A DNA stretch of 64,000 nt from Histomonas meleagridis 2922-C6/04-290x. Lineage: Eukaryota; Protista; Parabasalia. The notes beneath the pieces were generated by a model, which saw only the letters and a list, made by a program, of their open reading frames with translations, was not told the origin of the DNA and did no database searches. The stretch covers positions 248,001 through 312,000 of the forward strand of contig JAANOX010000153.1 in NCBI GenBank assembly GCA_020184695.1, given 5' to 3'. Shown here piece after piece: positions 21,869-29,264 of this stretch; the first letter of the stretch is position 1, and the number at the start of each line of letters is the position of its first letter. The position numbers and the translations under genes were made by a program.

Positions 21869-22103
21869 GAAATAGTAAAATTACTTTTTGATAAAGAAGG
21901 AATTGATGTTAATGTAAAAAGAATTCATTTGAATAATTTGGAATATGTTTTAATCATTTGAAACAGCACTTCATATAGCAGTTAGAAATAATGATTTAGA
22001 AATAGTAAAATTACTTTTTGATAAAGAAGGAATTGATGTTAATGTAAAAAGAATTCATTTGAATAATTTGGAATATGTTTTAATCATTTGAAACAGCACT
22101 TCA
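21869..22103 (+). pseudogene. Ankyrin-repeat remnant: exact 130-nt-period tandem duplication with 2 x (17+3)-nt spacers
   Basis: EIVKLLFDKEGIDVNVKR | attcatttgaataattt GGA atatgttttaatcattt GAA | TAL, present twice; no start codon or upstream domain found. Confidence 0.8.
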
Positions 22104-22458
22104 ATTGCATAATTTATTGATTTTCTCTCATTTTCGAAAACCAATGATTATATTGATCTACATATATACAAATATATTAGATTGGTCCAAAATGAAAAAC
22201 AAAAAATAACTGTTGAAGAAACTCAACATTCACCTAAGTTTAATCTTCATTGATAAACAATTCAAAAAAAGCTATCGATCATATTGAATCACAGCAAAAC
22301 TTTTAGAAAAGTGAAACCAATCTTTTACTCTTTAGGGTTTCAAGGTGTTTGAGCATATTTTCTAATGTTTACATGTTTTTTATATAAAAAATATGTTCGT
22401 CTGTCTACAGAGATCTTGAAAAACCTTTGAATGACTTAATCTTTCCTATTTCCTGAAT

Positions 22459-22531
22459 ACCTTCGTAGCTCAACGGTTAGAGCATAGGACTTTTAATCCT
22501 GGGGTTGCGGGTTCGAATCCCGTCGAAGGTG
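22459..22531 (+). tRNA. tRNA-Lys(UUU)
   Basis: Acceptor ACCTTCG/CGAAGGT plus G73, anticodon arm TAGGA-CT-TTT-AA-TCCTG, T-arm GCGGG-TTCGAAT-CCCGT, T8 terminator. Confidence 0.95.
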
Positions 22532-22542
22532 AATTTTTTTTG
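22516..22542 (+). repeat. Left target-site duplication (tRNA-Lys 3' 16 nt plus terminator)
   Basis: AATCCCGTCGAAGGTGAATTTTTTTTG; matches 29238-29264 at 26/27 positions. Confidence 0.92.
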
Positions 22543-25500
22543 TTCTTTGATGGAGAGTTCTATTTTTGCTGAGAATTCGCCTTTAGCTTCGTTACAGGGA
22601 GAGGAATCGAATGATACTTTTTTCTCAAAATTCAAATTTTTATCAGATAGATTATTTGGAAATTCAAAACTTCATACGAACAATTTTACAGGAATAGAGG
22701 GTCATACATCTGAATTACGATCAACAGAAAACGAATCTTTAATTACGAATAATTATGAAGATATTTATATTTTAAAGTTCGACCATGTACTACAAGATAA
22801 GACTAATAAATGGGATATTAATGAAAATTATTATAGAGATAACAAAGAAATTATTACAGATCGAACATTACAAAACTTTTTACAAAATTATATAATTAAT
22901 AAAGATTTTCCCAACAAGGAAGAAATTAAAAGAATTATTAGCGATACAATCAAGAAACAAATACCAAAGCCTAACATTTGGTTACAACAGAATTAATTAA
23001 TTTATAATTTTTTAAATTTCCCAATTTCTCAATTATTCAAATTAAATGAGTTTCGTGAAATTCCATTACCCGAACCATTTTGTTGTTCATCAGTTCCAGA
23101 ATGTAATTTTTTCACAAAAAATTTTCAAATACTATCAAAACATTTATCAGAAGAACATGATATTGACCCTAATCAAGAATTACTCTTTCACGAAAGAATC
23201 ATACAAAGATTATTGACTAAAAACGAATATATTATAAAATCAAAAAATTATAAAAGATTCTGTCCGTTTCCAAATTGTTATAAAATTATTTCTAACAATT
23301 TTGAATTAATCAAGACCACAGTTCAGAAATAATTATAAATTCTTTACAAACCGTCGGGTTATTTTGGACGTTAATCTTTTCATGGACAAAAACTTACGGA
23401 AAATTACATCATTAAATTTATTAAAAACACAAGTTGATTTTGGAATATTTAATAATATTAATCCAGATGCTTGGAGAGAAATTTATTTGATTAATGAACA
23501 TTATGAAAACAAAGATTTTACTGAAATTGATTTACCATATTGGATATTAATCATCGAACAAAATAACATCAATATTGAGATTACGAATATATGTTCTTAT
23601 CGAGGTTTAATATTACCACCAGATACTTTTCGAATTATAAATAAAACATTATTAATCAGACCTGACACATTACAAGTCTTAAATAACAAAATTAGACCAA
23701 ATAAAAACATTTCTCATGTTACACAAGTTAAACAATATCCAATTAATGTTCCTAATTTCTCTATTACACAGAAAAACATAAATTGTGATTTACCAGTAGT
23801 AAAAGTTGAAGAAAAAATTATTGATATTCCAGACTTCAAAATCAATAATGAGAAAAAATTAATATCGTTATACCTTATTACAACAAAGAAGACAAGTTAA
23901 TTACAATTCCTGATATTAAAATTAATAAAGAAAATTATTTAATACCAATTCTCAAATTTAAGAAAAAATTGGTATCTATTAAAATACCAGAGTATGAGAA
24001 ACAAACAGAAAATTTTATAATTCCAATACCTAATAATCAACAAGAAGATTTCAAAATAGACATACCGAATTACCAACAAAATTTACGAAATTATATAATA
24101 CCAATACCTCAATACAATCAAGAAAATTTTTTAGTTAATATTCCGAATTATCAAAATCAAATACAAAACATTAATATTCCAATACCAAACTATCAAAATC
24201 AAGTACAATATATTAATATTCCTATTCCGTATTACAATAAAGAAATTGTACCAGTTAATATTCCACAGATTAAAGTTAATGAACAAATTATAGAAGTACC
24301 AAAAATTAAATTTGTAGAAAAAGATATCAATTTTTCAATGCCAAACTATAATTTATCAAATATTAATATCAATATAAATCTAAATAATAACGAAACTCAA
24401 AATCAAAATAACAATGATAATCAAAATCAACTAAACTCAAATATTACATCCTTAGGATTCAATAACAATAATATTCCACAAGAAAATCAAATTCAAAATC
24501 AAATCAATAACATCAATTTAAATAATAATAATAATCACAATAATGAAAATAATAATAATATTAATGATGAAGGAGATTATACACCAGAAAATTTATTGAA
24601 TGATATTAGAAATGCGAATACTAAAGAAGAAATTAAATTAGTAATTAATAAATGGAAGAATAAAGATTTAAACGAGAACTTATTCATCTGCAATAATAAT
24701 AGATTTAAAATACCAATTTTAAATATTATAGCATTCGAAAAAAGTTGGCCAGGTGTAGGACCTTTTGTATGTACACAAGGAGATGGAAAAGCATTTACAT
24801 GTGTACCTCATTTGAAATATCATGAGAAACAAGTACATTTTAAAACATTTCCATATTGTACGATGTTAGAATTTTTAAACTTTTTAAGTTTAAGAAAAAA
24901 TTATTGGGAACAAGTTAATTTACAAGACCAACATCAAAGTTATCATAAGAATCTTTATTTTTGCTTTTGTCCAAATTGTGATTATTTTACTATGAATCAG
25001 GGTTCATTTTCTTCACATATGAAAACCAAACACAAATATATAGTTGATAAAAAATCAGAAATAGGATGGATTTGGGCGACTATTAAATATTGGATTAATC
25101 AAGTTAACCGAACACCAAATATTAACAAATTGATGAAAGAAAGATATGGTTTATTATGTGGTTATTGTAAAAAGACAATTACAGCTAATGAAGGAAACTT
25201 AAAATTACATGCATCTTCAATGCATAGTGATTCAAGAATAAAAGGAACAATTATCCCAAAACAAAAGATTAAGATTAAATCCACAATATTTAGAATCCTG
25301 CTACAAGAACAAATTGATGAAATTGTTAATGAAATTAAAGTTCAAGAGCAATCAACAGATGATAACAATAATAATCACTTCAATGATAGAAATATTATTA
25401 TTAATCAACAAATTAATGGAGAAATTAATAGAAATAATAATATTATTATACAAGATCAAGATCAAAGAGTCATTCAACAAGAACAATCAAATAATCAAGA

Positions 25501-28500
25501 AGTACAACAAAATAATAATCTAGAACAACAACGAGAAGAACAACTAAATAATAATCAAGAAGAACAACAAAATAATAATCAGGAACAACAACAAGTCGAA
25601 AATATAGGAATGACTCAGAAAGAACAACAAATTATTATAGAAGAAAGAAACTATTTACTAATAAAATGTAGAAAATGGTTAAATAGGGTAGAAATAGAAG
25701 AACAAAATGAGATTCATTTACCTAAACTTACTAAAAATATCAGACAAAAACTTATTATTTCAATTAAAGAATGTATGAAAAATAAAATAATTCCAATATT
25801 AAAGAAATGTTTAATCCAATAAATGAAAGTGAAACAGAATGGATAATCTTTGAAGGAGGATTAGCCAAAATGAATTTATCTATTAGAAAAACTTTACATA
25901 TTTCTTTAGAAAAATTGTTAGGTAAATCTATTAAGAAGAATAAAATCACAGATAGAGAAAAAGATACAATTAGAAGACAAAACAATATAATTAGAAATTT
26001 ATCAGAAATTACTAGTTATATTAAAAGGATTATAGAATTAAAAGATAAAACACCTACACAAACTATATTAAATACTATTTCAAGTATCGAAATAGAAATA
26101 GAAAATATTTTAAAGAATACTAATAATGATATATTAAATAAAATAATTGGAGGAAATAACATTGAACATATTCGAAACATTATTAATGATAATCCAGAAC
26201 ATAGAGAAAATGAATTAAATTATATTTCAGCTACATTAGAAAATATTCAACAAGATAATATGAATATTATATCAAAGAAATATAAAAATATAACTCAAAA
26301 CATGTATCGAGAAGATCCAGTTAGAGCTATCAGATGGTATATATTAAATGATCCTACACCAGAATGTGATTCAAATATAGAAGAAGTTGAGAATTATTAT
26401 AAAATACAATTTGAGAGAATTGCGAATTTTGAAGAACCAAAAGAAAATAGTTTATGGGACTCAAAAAAAATGATTGAGAAGAAAATAGAGATTTTTTAGT
26501 AAATAATCTATTAGATAAACATTTAATTAGAAATTCAATAAGATCAAGATCAAATATGGCTGCTAATGGTCCAGATGGAATTGGAAATCCTATATGGAAA
26601 ATAGATATTAAATCAACTACTAAAATTATTAAAATGATTAATGAACAAATAATTAAATTCGGAAAATTACCACAAACTTTAAAGAATTCGAAAACAATAT
26701 TATTATATAAAAAAGGTGATCCAAAAGAAATTAAATCTTGGAGACCTATATTAATATCAAATACATTGTATAGAATTGTAATGTGTCAGATATCAAAGAT
26801 TATCCAAATTATAAATCAAAATTGTAACTTTATTAATCATGTACAAAAAGGATTTAAAGCTGGTATTAATGGTATTTCAGAACATATAGCAACTATAAAT
26901 GAATTAATTTCTGAAGCTAAAAGAAATAATTCTTCAATCATTATTACTACACTAGATTTTACTAATGCTTTTGGGTCTGTTCCTCATAAAGCTATTTTAT
27001 GGAGTTTAAAGAAAAGAGGATTCCCAACGAAATTTATAGAAGCAATTAAAGACTTATATGATAATTCTTATACTACTATCAAAGTTGGAAATAAAAGAAC
27101 TGAACAAATTAAAATAAATAGAGGTGTAAGACAAGGATGTCCTTTATCACCTTTATTATTTAATTCATGCTTAGAACCTTTATTAAAGAAAATCCAGATT
27201 AAGCATAAACTGGATGGTGTTCCAATTAATACAAATGATAATGAGGTAATATATTTTAATATTCAAGCTTATGCTGATGATATAGTCTTGATTTCTCAAA
27301 CCCCTGAAGGTATGCAAAACATGTTAAATACAGTAGAAAAGTTCTGTAAGAAGAATGATATGTCAATGGCTCCACAAAAATGTAAAACTTTAAGTTATAT
27401 TAGAGAAAATAATCGAAGAGTTACATTAAATTATAACTTACAAATTCAGAATGATAATATTCCTAATTTACCATTATTAGAAGCTTTAGAATATTTAGGT
27501 TCATCTGCAGTAATTAAAAGAAAAGGTAGTTTTGATCATGCTAATATTAGATTAAATAAGATTAAAAATGAAATCATTAAAATTATGAAATCCCCATCAA
27601 AATTTAATCAAAAGATAGATGCGATTAAAAGAATGATTCTTCCTGAAATAGATTTCGAATTATTAAATGGTTATTGTTCAGAGAAAGAATTAAATAATAT
27701 TGATACAATGATTAGGAAATTAATTATGAAGGAATGTAAAACTAATAGTTTACCTAAAGAATTATTTTATACTAAATGGAGAGATGGAGGTTTAGGGTTA
27801 CCAAAATTATGGGAAAGAGCTAAAACTTTACAAATTAAGAACTTCCTAAATATTATAAAATCCTTTGATCCAAATTCTAGGAAATTATTCAGACAATCTT
27901 TTATTAATGAAATAGATTATAGAAAGATCGAAAAAGATTACAATTCACCCTATTTAAATATTCCAGTTGATGAGAATAATATAATTACACAAAACAGAAC
28001 AAATTGTTTATTCTCAAGAACAATTAAATCTTTAGCCAAATTAAAAATTGGTATGAAGATGAACTTTAATAAAGAAACTGCTAAAATATGGGACAACAAT
28101 TCAAATGATATTAATAAAATAATAGTTGATGAAACAAATATATTAAAAGAATTAAATAATATAATTAAAAACAGACATGGAGAAAAATTAAGAGCAAAAC
28201 CTATCAAAGGTTACACATTTAACACATTACAAAATTCTCCGTTATCCAATTTCTTCATTGGGAATTATAAAGCTCCAACTGCTGACTGCATTATACATTT
28301 CGCCGTAGTTTCAAGAACAAACAATTTGCCTACAGGCGAAATTTTGTATAAAAATGGAATCGGCGATGGAATTTGTCATAAATGTAATAACAATTACAAT
28401 GATTCCCTCATGCACAGATTAAATGGTTGTATTAATTTAAGAAATAAATATACTATTCGACATAATGCAATCATTAAAGAAATATTAAAAGAAATTAAAC

Positions 28501-29237
28501 CGAATAATAATATTATATTTAATTATGATAGGCCAATCAGTAAAAGAAATATAAGATTAGAAGGAAACTCCAGAAATCTTAAACCGGATGTATGGTGGTT
28601 TTCCAGTAATTATCAAAATCTTAAAATTATTGAAGTAACGTCACCATATGGCCAATTAACTGACGACCCAAATAGTAATGAAAGAAAATCAACTTTAGAG
28701 TTGAGAAGAATAGAGAAGATTAACAAGTATAGACAACTAATTGAAGATTGTAGGAATACATTTAACGTCCAAGTGGAATTTTATGTTATAGTAGTATCCT
28801 CGTTAGGTGCAATTCCTGAAGAAACAATTCATGAATTAAAACTATTATATAATAATGAAAGAACAGCGAGATTAGTAGCAAAAAGATGTTCAGTAGCCGC
28901 TTTAAGAGAATCTATGTTGTTATTATATAAGAGTTTTAAAGAGTATAACGTACTACAAAATAATAATGATACTACTATTAACATTCAACCAACATCATCA
29001 AATGAAGAAGATTCAATCGATGATTTACAAGAAGATGTTGGTGTAAATCAAGAAGAACTTGACGAAAATGTTGAGGATGGGTTAGGGCATCCCCAACATG
29101 ACGATCAATAAAGTCCTTAAAAAAAACCGACGAGATTTGGTTTATGAATAAAACAAGAGTCAAAGTGAAGTAGAACAAGGCGGACGCGTCTATAATTAAA
29201 GATAATATCACTAATAACATACGACAATGAATAAACA
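22543..29237 (+). mobile_element. Non-LTR retrotransposon with restriction-like endonuclease (R2/NeSL-type architecture) inserted at the tRNA-Lys 3' end; ORF disrupted by one in-frame stop and several frameshifts
   Basis: RT motifs GVRQGCPLSPLLFN and AYADD; CCHC knuckle CHKC...H...C, RHN, KPD, IIEVTSPY (RLE); N-terminal C2H2 fingers. Bounded by a 27-bp direct repeat. Confidence 0.93.
26556..29111 (+). CDS. Reverse transcriptase + RLE endonuclease portion of the retrotransposon ORF
   Basis: 851-aa ORF with RT and RLE motifs. Its frame extends upstream and joins ORF 25807-26499 if one T is added to the T-run near 26492-26497. Confidence 0.9.
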   Translation: MAANGPDGIGNPIWKIDIKSTTKIIKMINEQIIKFGKLPQTLKNSKTILLYKKGDPKEIKSWRPILISNTLYRIVMCQISKIIQIINQNCNFINHVQKGFKAGINGISEHIATINELISEAKRNNSSIIITTLDFTNAFGSVPHKAILWSLKKRGFPTKFIEAIKDLYDNSYTTIKVGNKRTEQIKINRGVRQGCPLSPLLFNSCLEPLLKKIQIKHKLDGVPINTNDNEVIYFNIQAYADDIVLISQTPEGMQNMLNTVEKFCKKNDMSMAPQKCKTLSYIRENNRRVTLNYNLQIQNDNIPNLPLLEALEYLGSSAVIKRKGSFDHANIRLNKIKNEIIKIMKSPSKFNQKIDAIKRMILPEIDFELLNGYCSEKELNNIDTMIRKLIMKECKTNSLPKELFYTKWRDGGLGLPKLWERAKTLQIKNFLNIIKSFDPNSRKLFRQSFINEIDYRKIEKDYNSPYLNIPVDENNIITQNRTNCLFSRTIKSLAKLKIGMKMNFNKETAKIWDNNSNDINKIIVDETNILKELNNIIKNRHGEKLRAKPIKGYTFNTLQNSPLSNFFIGNYKAPTADCIIHFAVVSRTNNLPTGEILYKNGIGDGICHKCNNNYNDSLMHRLNGCINLRNKYTIRHNAIIKEILKEIKPNNNIIFNYDRPISKRNIRLEGNSRNLKPDVWWFSSNYQNLKIIEVTSPYGQLTDDPNSNERKSTLELRRIEKINKYRQLIEDCRNTFNVQVEFYVIVVSSLGAIPEETIHELKLLYNNERTARLVAKRCSVAALRESMLLLYKSFKEYNVLQNNNDTTINIQPTSSNEEDSIDDLQEDVGVNQEELDENVEDGLGHPQHDDQ

Positions 29238-29264
29238 AATCCCGTCGAAGGTGAATATTTTTTG
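29238..29264 (+). repeat. Right target-site duplication
   Basis: AATCCCGTCGAAGGTGAATATTTTTTG; copy of 22516-22542 with one mismatch. Confidence 0.92.

Follow-up and report, generated by a model that had tools for sequence, protein, structure and literature searches.

A site-specific R2/NeSL-group retrotransposon that probably targets the T-loop of tRNA-Lys(UUU) genes in a parabasalid and spares the tRNA

A retrotransposon that lies between two short direct repeats, each of them the tail end of a tRNA-Lys(UUU) gene, raises the question of whether it landed there by chance, travels together with its tRNA, or is directed to this gene and able to leave it whole. The locus lies in a stretch of 64,000 nucleotides (the window) from a 43-Mb parabasalid genome assembly, which was also covered by a census of further copies. 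The element is in all likelihood a site-specific non-LTR retrotransposon of the R2/NeSL (RLE) group that targets only the tRNA-Lys(UUU) gene, and of which the window holds a dead copy.

The gene upstream of the element is called as tRNA-Lys(UUU) by ARAGORN at 22458-22532, and the Rfam tRNA model matches it over its full length with 71.9 bits against a threshold of 29 (Table 1). The direct repeats are 27 nt long and identical at 26 of these positions, and consist of tRNA nt 58-73 followed by AA, a T-run and a G. The window holds two occurrences of a 19-mer of the repeat, against none expected from shuffled sequences (n = 100). The right repeat is the downstream portion of the original target. 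The left repeat restores the T-loop with the B-box, the T-stem, the acceptor strand and the first Pol III terminator run, and the complete upstream tRNA is followed by T8-G-TTCTTT. At the 3' junction the element terminus ...GAATAAACA directly abuts AATCCC..., past G57 of the T-loop/B-box, and no poly(A) is present at this end. The 3' end is exact and identical in four copies, and the 5' boundary lies within about 22540-22549, inside the T-runs.

Table 1. Positions in the window of the target gene, the repeats and the parts of the element
Feature	Position	Strand	Remarks
Target, complete tRNA-Lys(UUU) gene	22459..22531	+	ARAGORN, Rfam; nt 1-57 original, nt 58-73 = left repeat
Left repeat	22516..22542	+	tRNA nt 58-73 + AA, T8, G
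Non-LTR retrotransposon body, ~6.7 kb	22543..29237	+	copy homology (7 copies) starts at the tRNA and continues through the element
Start codon (22550-22552) and first reading-frame piece	22550..22996	+	start one base past the T-run
Second open N-terminal piece	23364..23900	+	out of frame with its neighbours
Open piece with low-complexity repeats rich in N/Q/I and with two C2H2 fingers	23969..25822	+	
RT N-terminal extension	25807..26499	+	28-40% identity in sister families (tblastn on their loci)
851-codon open piece: RT, linker/thumb, CCHC, RLE, acidic tail	26556..29111	+	stop 29109-29111
Reverse transcriptase	about 26718-27395	+	YADD at 27270
CCHC motif	28374-28430	+	
Restriction-like endonuclease PD...E...K	28584-28718	+	
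3' untranslated region	29112..29237	+	GC-rich palindrome GGCGGACGCGTC; terminus AATAAACA
Right repeat	29238..29264	+	severed tRNA nt 58-73 (29238-29253), then AATAT6G

The open pieces of the element were scanned against Pfam and searched one by one, each as it stands rather than as repaired or consensus sequence. The first N-terminal piece contains no recognised domain. A motif scan places the two C2H2 fingers at 24962-25033 and 25157-25225, with a Pfam zf-H2C2_5 match at E 4.9e-4. The 851-codon piece matches RVT_1 with E 1.8e-36, and its best solved-structure matches are R2 proteins (PDB; E 2.7e-43 over RT plus thumb). Across 26 relatives the YADD motif is invariant, and C607, C610, H620 and C625, as well as P677-D678, E693 and K721, are each at least 90% conserved; the nuclease region itself gives a weak match to L_protein_N, a PD-(D/E)XK-type family (E 0.0065). 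The nuclease is C-terminal and of the PD-(D/E)XK type. No open piece matches in Pfam the APE domain (Exo_endo_phos), which in APE-type tRNA-associated elements such as Dictyostelium TRE and Dewa stands N-terminal to the RT. A Ulp1-like protease domain is absent from all five open pieces in the Pfam scan; this domain is found only in nematode NeSL elements and one Utopia element and is not universal in the NeSL clade (PMC4640811). There are no LTRs or terminal inverted repeats, the 27-nt target repeat being the sole flanking repeat, and Rfam returns no match to a self-cleaving HDV-like ribozyme such as R2 proper has at its 5' end, nor to anything besides the tRNA, at E <= 1 between 22000 and 29600, a search that divergent ribozymes may escape. 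An earlier note, made from the letters of the window, had described a 6.7-kb RT/RLE element between 27-bp direct repeats, a 3' junction without poly(A) inside the T-loop, and an upstream tRNA and terminator preserved by duplication. The zinc fingers, RVT_1, YADD, CCHC and PD...E...K signatures, the cut after G57 and the complete gene recognised by ARAGORN and Rfam bear this description out, with the small correction that the right repeat starts at 29238 and hence the last base of the element is 29237.

The genome contains 12 tRNA-Lys(UUU) genes, seven of which are occupied by the element at the identical place, between nt 57 and 58 of the T-loop; the remaining five carry no element. An eighth, older copy that is 76% identical to the window copy lies 3' of a decayed tRNA-Lys. 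All 5' ends (8/8, seven young and one old) adjoin tRNA-Lys(UUU), and the 3' ends (4/4) fall at the same nucleotide, each reading ...GAATAAACA and then tRNA nt 58-73. Homology among the copies begins at tRNA nt 1; the upstream flanks differ at 55% of sites, as random sequences do, and the outer flanks are unrelated up to tRNA nt 1 and past the right T-run. One of the empty genes has a 1.1-kb upstream flank that is 92% identical to that of an occupied gene. At least 15 tRNA-Lys(CUU) genes have the same T-arm and none is occupied.

The tRNA in the window is identical to, or one base apart from, those at the other occupied loci. Pairwise, the rebuilt tRNAs differ by 0.4% as compared with 4.9-6.8% for the adjoining element, so that the tRNA copies upstream surpass it in conservation by a factor of about 12-17, and therefore look selected and functional. 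Over half of the tRNA-Lys(UUU) genes of the parasite accordingly bear a 6-7-kb passenger with no visible loss of the tRNA. Because all ends of the copies coincide, empty genes exist and the tRNA copies are the better conserved part, the element represents a tRNA-specific, target-sparing RLE family, which agrees with the safe-harbour strategy proposed in the earlier note.

One private stop and five private frameshifts show the window copy to be dead. The stop ends the first reading-frame piece at a codon that other copies read through, private indels near 23313, 23405 and 23850 put the second piece out of frame, and private frameshifts near 25814 and 26477 sever the RT N-terminal extension from its neighbours. 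Two further full-length copies that were read through are broken too, and none of the copies read has an intact frame. The private nature of the indels and the conservation of the region 25807-26499 in sister families suggest that the element originally had a single continuous ORF. The census holds fewer 3' ends (four) than 5' ends (eight), no intact copy and no 5'-truncated copy, which is unusual for the class.

A mode of insertion can be proposed by analogy with R2. A protein encoded by the element would bind the tRNA gene, and its PD-(D/E)XK nuclease would nick the bottom strand opposite the G57/A58 step in the T-loop/B-box. The freed 3' end would then prime reverse transcription from the ...AAUAAACA end of the RNA (target-primed reverse transcription). 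The top strand would be cut in the first Pol III terminator T-run, some 24-26 nt downstream of the nick, and gap repair would then duplicate tRNA nt 58-73 and part of the terminator. Upstream of the element this would leave a tRNA gene that is complete and terminated, and downstream of it an orphan tRNA tail of 16 nt. As the first ORF opens one base past the T-runs, the rebuilt tRNA tail or terminator would have to contain the start of transcription or else drive it. What is shown is which element this is, that it is site-specific, that the tRNA survives whole and that this copy has decayed; the order and positions of the nicks, like the source of the promoter, are presumptive.

The left repeat could have another origin. 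In all four complete copies the left and right repeats differ at one base, and in the sister copies C14 and C29/C155 the differing base is one and the same T-loop position, polymorphic in nature, with A59 in the left repeat and G59 in the right; the mismatch counts against a plain duplication, which does not predict it. It is possible, if unlikely, that the left repeat arose otherwise than by target-site duplication and that the RNA of the element, with the same site and the same enzyme, carries a tRNA-derived 5' leader (nt 58-73 plus terminator) or a 3' read-through tail, in which case the rebuilt tRNA or the orphan fragment would come with the element and not from the target. All seven left copies read A59, AA, T7-8, G, T6-7, with the exception of C154, which has lost the G and part of the T-runs; left copies so alike (7/7) fit an element-borne leader too. 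The tRNA of the C29 copy has a 5' half of the C5 type and a left repeat with A59, yet C5 is accompanied by G59 in each of the three empty genes that have this 5' half, and the orphan fragment of this copy has G59. C14 and C29 moreover have a 3-nt insertion and 3' UTR variants in common, and both of their fragments carry G59. The start of the ORF so close to the T-runs implies that the RNA must include some upstream sequence, and since AAUAAA stands at the extreme end of the element, transcripts probably extend into the fragment. However, a 5' leader derived from the downstream target has no known mechanism in this class, and the 5-7% divergence between copies predicts one mismatch per ~26 nt per pair. 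The two repeats of the window copy also have the same T-run length and the same G separator, and the occupied and empty paralogues of C79 agree through AA-T7 and then diverge, as expected of a 25-nt duplication; the downstream flank of the empty site has no match in the compared parts of the occupied locus. Finally, every variant of the element-borne account requires one ad hoc event. Duplication of the target remains the preferred explanation of the left repeat.

It is highly improbable that the tRNA is itself part of a mobile or duplicated unit, either as the head of the element or in tRNA-plus-element blocks spread by segmental duplication. A full tRNA stands at every 5' end, the tRNA of the old copy has decayed roughly as far as its element, and the C57/C261/C1 copies of another family have common flanks, all of which such a unit would accommodate. 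It would not account for tRNAs that are so much better conserved than the element next to them, for flanks that show no kinship all the way to tRNA nt 1 on one side and past the right T-run on the other, or for five empty genes for the same tRNA, one of them a paralogue of an occupied locus. In addition, one occupied tRNA is the other natural 5'-half variant, and sister families bear fragments of other tRNAs, each family its own, at that same site in the T-loop. Chance insertion of a non-specific element beside a tRNA gene, for which nothing speaks except the window copy viewed alone, is ruled out by the census, with eight of eight 5' ends and four of four 3' ends at one nucleotide of one tRNA species in 43 Mb.

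The sister families extend the pattern of targeting to other tRNA genes. One ends in tRNA-Arg(ACG) and another in a third tRNA, both at the T-loop position that the Lys family uses. The intact T-loop-to-end sequence of the latter was predicted from a 15-nt fragment alone and then found seven times; four of these seven matches sit 1.6-2.5 kb upstream of the RT of that family and on the correct strand. The 5' junctions of the Arg family (near C48:24930 and C259:76512) and of the third family (C88:39578, C87:142469, C245:88634 and C32:229394) are presumed from coordinates only. The Arg family still has a frame of 954 codons open on C227, and an Rfam search of the junctions of the other families returned nothing. 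These families make it conceivable, albeit doubtful, that target choice is at least in part guided by RNA. The protein would then nick the common B-box step of tRNA genes, GGTTCG/A, and the start of reverse transcription would need a donor-derived read-through 3' tail (tRNA nt 58-73) to pair with the nicked bottom strand. Guidance of this kind would explain why the identical T-loop nucleotide is used in the tRNA-Lys, tRNA-Arg and third-tRNA families and why the G59 fragment variants track the element lineage in C14 and C29. If true, a swap of the tail would retarget the element.

Elements of this kind are already on record. NeSL-1_TV of Trichomonas vaginalis, likewise an RLE-type non-LTR retrotransposon of a parabasalid, is reported to be specific for tRNA-Pro (Kojima & Jurka 2015, PMC4640811), as opposed to tRNA-Lys here, a comparison made by published description. 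NeSL is the sole retrotransposon lineage reported in trichomonad genomes (PMC12289875), where its elements average 4.4 kb as against the 6.7 kb found here. In the planarian Schmidtea, the RLE elements LIN15_SM and LIN25_SM (R5/LIN lineage, NeSL clade) have tRNA-Arg and tRNA-Glu genes as their specific targets (PMC4640811). They resemble the Lys element in their tRNA specificity but belong to an animal, and have their 3' junctions at more upstream positions of the tRNA, with a right flank that retains the anticodon arm and no visible sign of tRNA rebuilding (PMC4640811 supplement). The earlier note had left these three elements out of its list of known ones and implied a novelty that does not hold for the kind of element; the tRNA-Lys target itself is not catalogued in the papers searched.

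R2 (R2Bm, R2Tg) has the same domain order of zinc fingers, RT, CCHC and PD-(D/E)XK nuclease, and shares with the Lys element the use of a multicopy RNA gene as a safe harbour and a precise 3' junction that lacks poly(A). Unlike the Lys element, R2 inactivates its 28S rDNA target upon insertion, with little or no duplication; the conserved 28S rDNA site of R2 proper is not used here, all copies being in tRNA-Lys(UUU) genes. Utopia (U2 snRNA gene, NeSL clade) and SLACS/CZAR (spliced-leader gene, CRE clade) are also RLE elements of small-RNA genes with a precise 3' junction, but their target genes are different and their duplications are not reported to restore a working gene copy. The duplications measure ~49 bp in SLACS/CZAR. 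Those of reptile Utopia are 20 bp long (PMC4640811). The Dictyostelium TRE elements, yeast Ty3 and Dada use tRNA genes as landing marks, as here, but none of the three is an RLE retrotransposon that cuts inside the T-loop. TRE elements have an APE nuclease and insert either about 50 bp upstream of the tRNA gene or 100 bp downstream, Ty3 relies on an integrase and Pol III factors, and Dada belongs to the DNA transposons and makes 6-7-bp duplications (PMC8869645).

The general view of retroelement capabilities stays as it was, because tRNA-specific RLE elements had already been reported. R2-type elements are the best-understood site-specific retroelements and are in development as tools for gene insertion at safe genomic sites. 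In one genome, several closely related families use different tRNA genes but cut them at one and the same T-loop step; the Lys family rebuilds the gene that it enters and the third-tRNA family presumably does likewise. This amounts to a natural experiment on how such elements switch targets and how insertion becomes harmless.

Beyond this genome, a metagenome scan with a profile of 26 relatives returned distant RTs only (23-34% identity), with a tRNA gene in none of 80 loci, and is uninformative on targeting. The closest metagenome proteins are 34-46% identical, and in a tree with arthropod R2-like proteins as the reference set, the families of this genome group with 21 metagenome proteins in a clade distinct from the arthropod ones. 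Folding of the 3' UTR together with the tRNA fragment gave a long-range helix across the junction with a z of only -1.8, and the Arg family has nothing similar; the helix is not taken as evidence. The palindrome GGCGGACGCGTC of the 3' UTR is near-identical in the C57/C160 family, and the Arg family has a different short palindrome.

The AT-rich window (G+C about 28%) contains a tRNA-Lys(UUU) gene followed by a non-LTR retrotransposon of the restriction-like endonuclease (RLE) type, which lies between two copies of the tRNA tail with its T-run terminator. The 27-bp direct repeats claimed in the earlier note, identical at 26 positions, are read in the sequence at both ends of the element, and a 19-mer taken from them has just two occurrences in the 64 kb, against none expected by chance. 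Directly 5' of the right repeat the element reads ...GAATAAACA, without poly(A), which places the break between G57 and A58 of the T-loop and hence, as had been stated, inside the B-box. The earlier description of the element is accurate overall except for its end coordinate, the last element base being 29237. Just 5' of the tRNA gene lies an exact 105-nt direct repeat with a spacing of 130 nt (window 21869-22103).

Features of the window element, its target and the Arg-family junction
Feature	Position	Strand	Basis or content
tRNA-Lys(UUU)	22458-22532		ARAGORN
tRNA-Lys(UUU)	22459-22531		Rfam tRNA model, end-to-end match, 71.9 bits
Left repeat	22516-22542		tRNA nt 58-73 + AA + T-run + G (sequence reading)
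First ATG	22550	+	one base past the T-runs
Open piece	23969-25822	+	two C2H2 fingers between N/Q-rich repeats
Open piece	25807-26499	+	kept in sister families at 28-40% identity
Last open piece	26556-29111	+	851 codons; RVT_1 match at 1.8e-36
Right repeat	29238-29264		same 27 nt as left repeat, one T-to-A difference
Arg-family 3' fragment and intact tRNA-Arg	L017:2461-2476 and 2765-2837 (C227:116949-117325)

The 43.1-Mb assembly (281 contigs), in which the window corresponds to C153:248001-312000, was searched with both parts of the element. The 5' part recovers seven copies of 90-96% identity (contigs C153, C29, C237, C61, C154, C79 and C14), in which homology to the window starts at the first tRNA base, and a further, old copy of 76% identity after a decayed tRNA-Lys (L038 reverse strand, about 1426-1500; C61:558409-558480). 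The 3' part recovers four ends (C153, C61, C14 and C29, the last split across a contig break, from the end of C29 to the beginning of C155), all of which read ...GAATAAACA followed by tRNA nt 58-73, as the earlier note had expected of aligned flanks. The outer flanks are unrelated among occupied loci, with 55% of upstream sites differing. With seven young and one old 5' ends and four of four 3' ends at tRNA-Lys, the earlier observation is confirmed and its interpretation, a tRNA-specific RLE family in a safe harbour, is supported.

A 17-mer from the tail of the tRNA has 16 occurrences in the genome; these sites together with C220 comprise 12 intact tRNA-Lys(UUU) genes, of which seven are occupied and five empty, besides orphan fragments. 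At least 15 tRNA-Lys(CUU) genes are unoccupied. Their nt 44-64 are identical to those of one tRNA-Lys(UUU) variant and their acceptor strand and anticodon arm differ, therefore recognition needs more than the T-arm. In the old copy the tRNA-Lys is as decayed as the element and directly abuts the start codon without a T-run. The C14 copy is followed by its tRNA fragment, T-runs and then the initial 150 nt of another element (C14:67271-67451, L040), a tandem arrangement left over from more than one insertion into the rebuilt site.

The exact 3' junction common to the copies points to R2-style target-primed reverse transcription, which would start from a bottom-strand nick at 57|58 of the tRNA-Lys gene. 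The left boundary is consistent with cleavage of the top strand 24-26 nt downstream, within the first T-run, and the addition of zero to two extra bases; given such a cut, the element's own 5' end would be G-T6-G-ATG. On C79 an empty gene and an occupied gene 14 kb away have a 92%-identical 1.1-kb upstream flank, and these paralogues agree through AA-T7 and diverge after it, as the top-strand-cut model predicts. In a predicted fold of window 29112-29256, the first part of the 3' UTR base-pairs with both the end of the element and the tRNA fragment, giving about 20 bp across the junction (z only -1.8); no equivalent was seen on folding the Arg family, a related family of the same genome.

The left and right repeats differ by one mismatch in each of the four complete copies, which is the rate predicted by the 5-7% divergence. 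In the sister copies on C14 and C29 one and the same site is affected, a naturally polymorphic position with A59 in the left repeat and G59 in the right. To account for this pattern, a simple duplication has to invoke either two changes that coincide or gene conversion. A leader carried by the element, or copying of a 3' tail, would each need one ad hoc event, and such an origin of the left repeat or orphan fragment is considered unlikely. The C29 tRNA has the C5 variant, and in each of the three empty genes with this variant C5 goes with G59. These genes (L043, L044 and L045, on C123, C117 and C220) represent a second natural tRNA-Lys(UUU) variant, in which C5 stands opposite A68 as an acceptor-stem mismatch alongside G59.

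Duplication of the target would leave a complete gene upstream of each insertion, and the claim that the tRNA is preserved is borne out by the end-to-end Rfam match and by the B-box and T-run of at least seven kept in every rebuilt gene. Across the seven occupied loci the pairwise difference is 0.4% in the 73-nt tRNA, whereas it reaches 6.8% over the 300 nt of element sequence that come next and 4.9% over the kilobase beyond. Together with the kept B-box and T-run, this argues for purifying selection, or conversion, acting on working tRNA-Lys genes, and the contrast in divergence speaks against the view that the element simply carries the tRNA as a passive head.

Five open pieces, all on the plus strand, lie between the repeats (ORF list, translation table 11). 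The product of the last matches solved R2 proteins at 2.7e-43 over the RT and thumb. In an alignment with 25 database relatives YADD is invariant, and a CCHC motif (C607, C610, H620, C625) and the PD-(D/E)XK nuclease residues P677-D678, E693 and K721 are present. The piece before it is the N-terminal extension of the RT, because it is conserved in sister families. Domain, repeat and Rfam searches of the window element found no APE domain, protease, LTRs or ribozyme, and its architecture is that of R2/NeSL. An alignment of three full-length and four partial Lys-family copies indicates that the window copy is dead: a stop (22994-22996) and frameshifting indels near 23313, 23405, 23850, 25814 and 26477 are private to it. 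The other two full-length copies are also broken, at different places, and in the ancestral element 22550-29111 was most likely a single long frame. The window also encodes BspA-type LRR proteins, ankyrins and a short Hsp70, whose closest named relatives are Histomonas meleagridis paralogues.

Elements specific for tRNA genes are an already known kind, of which the tRNA-Lys family is a further member. NeSL-1_TV of Trichomonas vaginalis targets tRNA-Pro (Kojima & Jurka 2015, PMC4640811) and the planarian LIN15_SM and LIN25_SM target tRNA-Arg and tRNA-Glu (PMC4640811), whereas the target here is tRNA-Lys(UUU). Reptile Utopia elements have 20-bp duplications on record (PMC4640811). Later reviews list tRNA genes among non-LTR element targets, and no retrotransposon other than a single NeSL family has been reported across trichomonads (PMC12289875). 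Among the published papers searched, none was found to name a tRNA-Lys-specific family or to describe the tRNA-rebuilding duplication.

RT-related DNA of 65-73% identity is present on more than 20 contigs of the genome. In a tree, the genome's families cluster with 21 metagenome proteins in a clade (support 100) separate from the arthropod R2-like proteins; the Lys, Arg and C56 families of this clade are joined in one group with a support of 99. The Arg family on C227 ends ...CTAATAAAC, directly after which the final 16 nt of tRNA-Arg(ACG) begin at A58, and an intact tRNA-Arg lies 361 bp downstream. This copy keeps an open frame of 954 codons (L011:853-3714), so the family may still be active. 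Going by coordinates only, tRNA-Arg tails lie 3.9 kb (C259) and 4.2 kb (C48) upstream of Arg-family RT, distances that match the Lys element, and we infer that they mark Arg-family 5' ends. A third family (C88) terminates with an A-run, and a 15-nt tRNA-tail fragment and T10 come next (L018:3567-3581; C88:44135). The intact T-loop-to-end 20-mer predicted from this fragment has seven exact occurrences in the genome (C88:39578, C87:142469, C245:88634, C32:229394, C47:151364, C62:99588 and C83:258299), four of them 1.6-2.5 kb upstream of third-family RT on the right strand.

Another family, with copies on C57, C160 (twice), C261, C233 and C254, ends AAATAAACA, followed by a 24-nt sequence and T6-A-T6 (L083:1501-1524, L084, L085, L086, L087, L026), after which 100-300 nt are conserved from copy to copy. 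A genome search allowing up to two mismatches found no intact gene that contains this 24-mer, and an Rfam search of the junction returned nothing; the 24-mer may be a target, may belong to the element or may reflect a tandem arrangement. The 3' flank of the C56 copy is not a fragment ending in a T-run, so that some of the families here may lack specificity for tRNA genes. Long open frames are found in the C56 family (at least 948 codons, L008:1123-3966) and in the C20 family (at least 1141 codons, L023; C20:822-4248).
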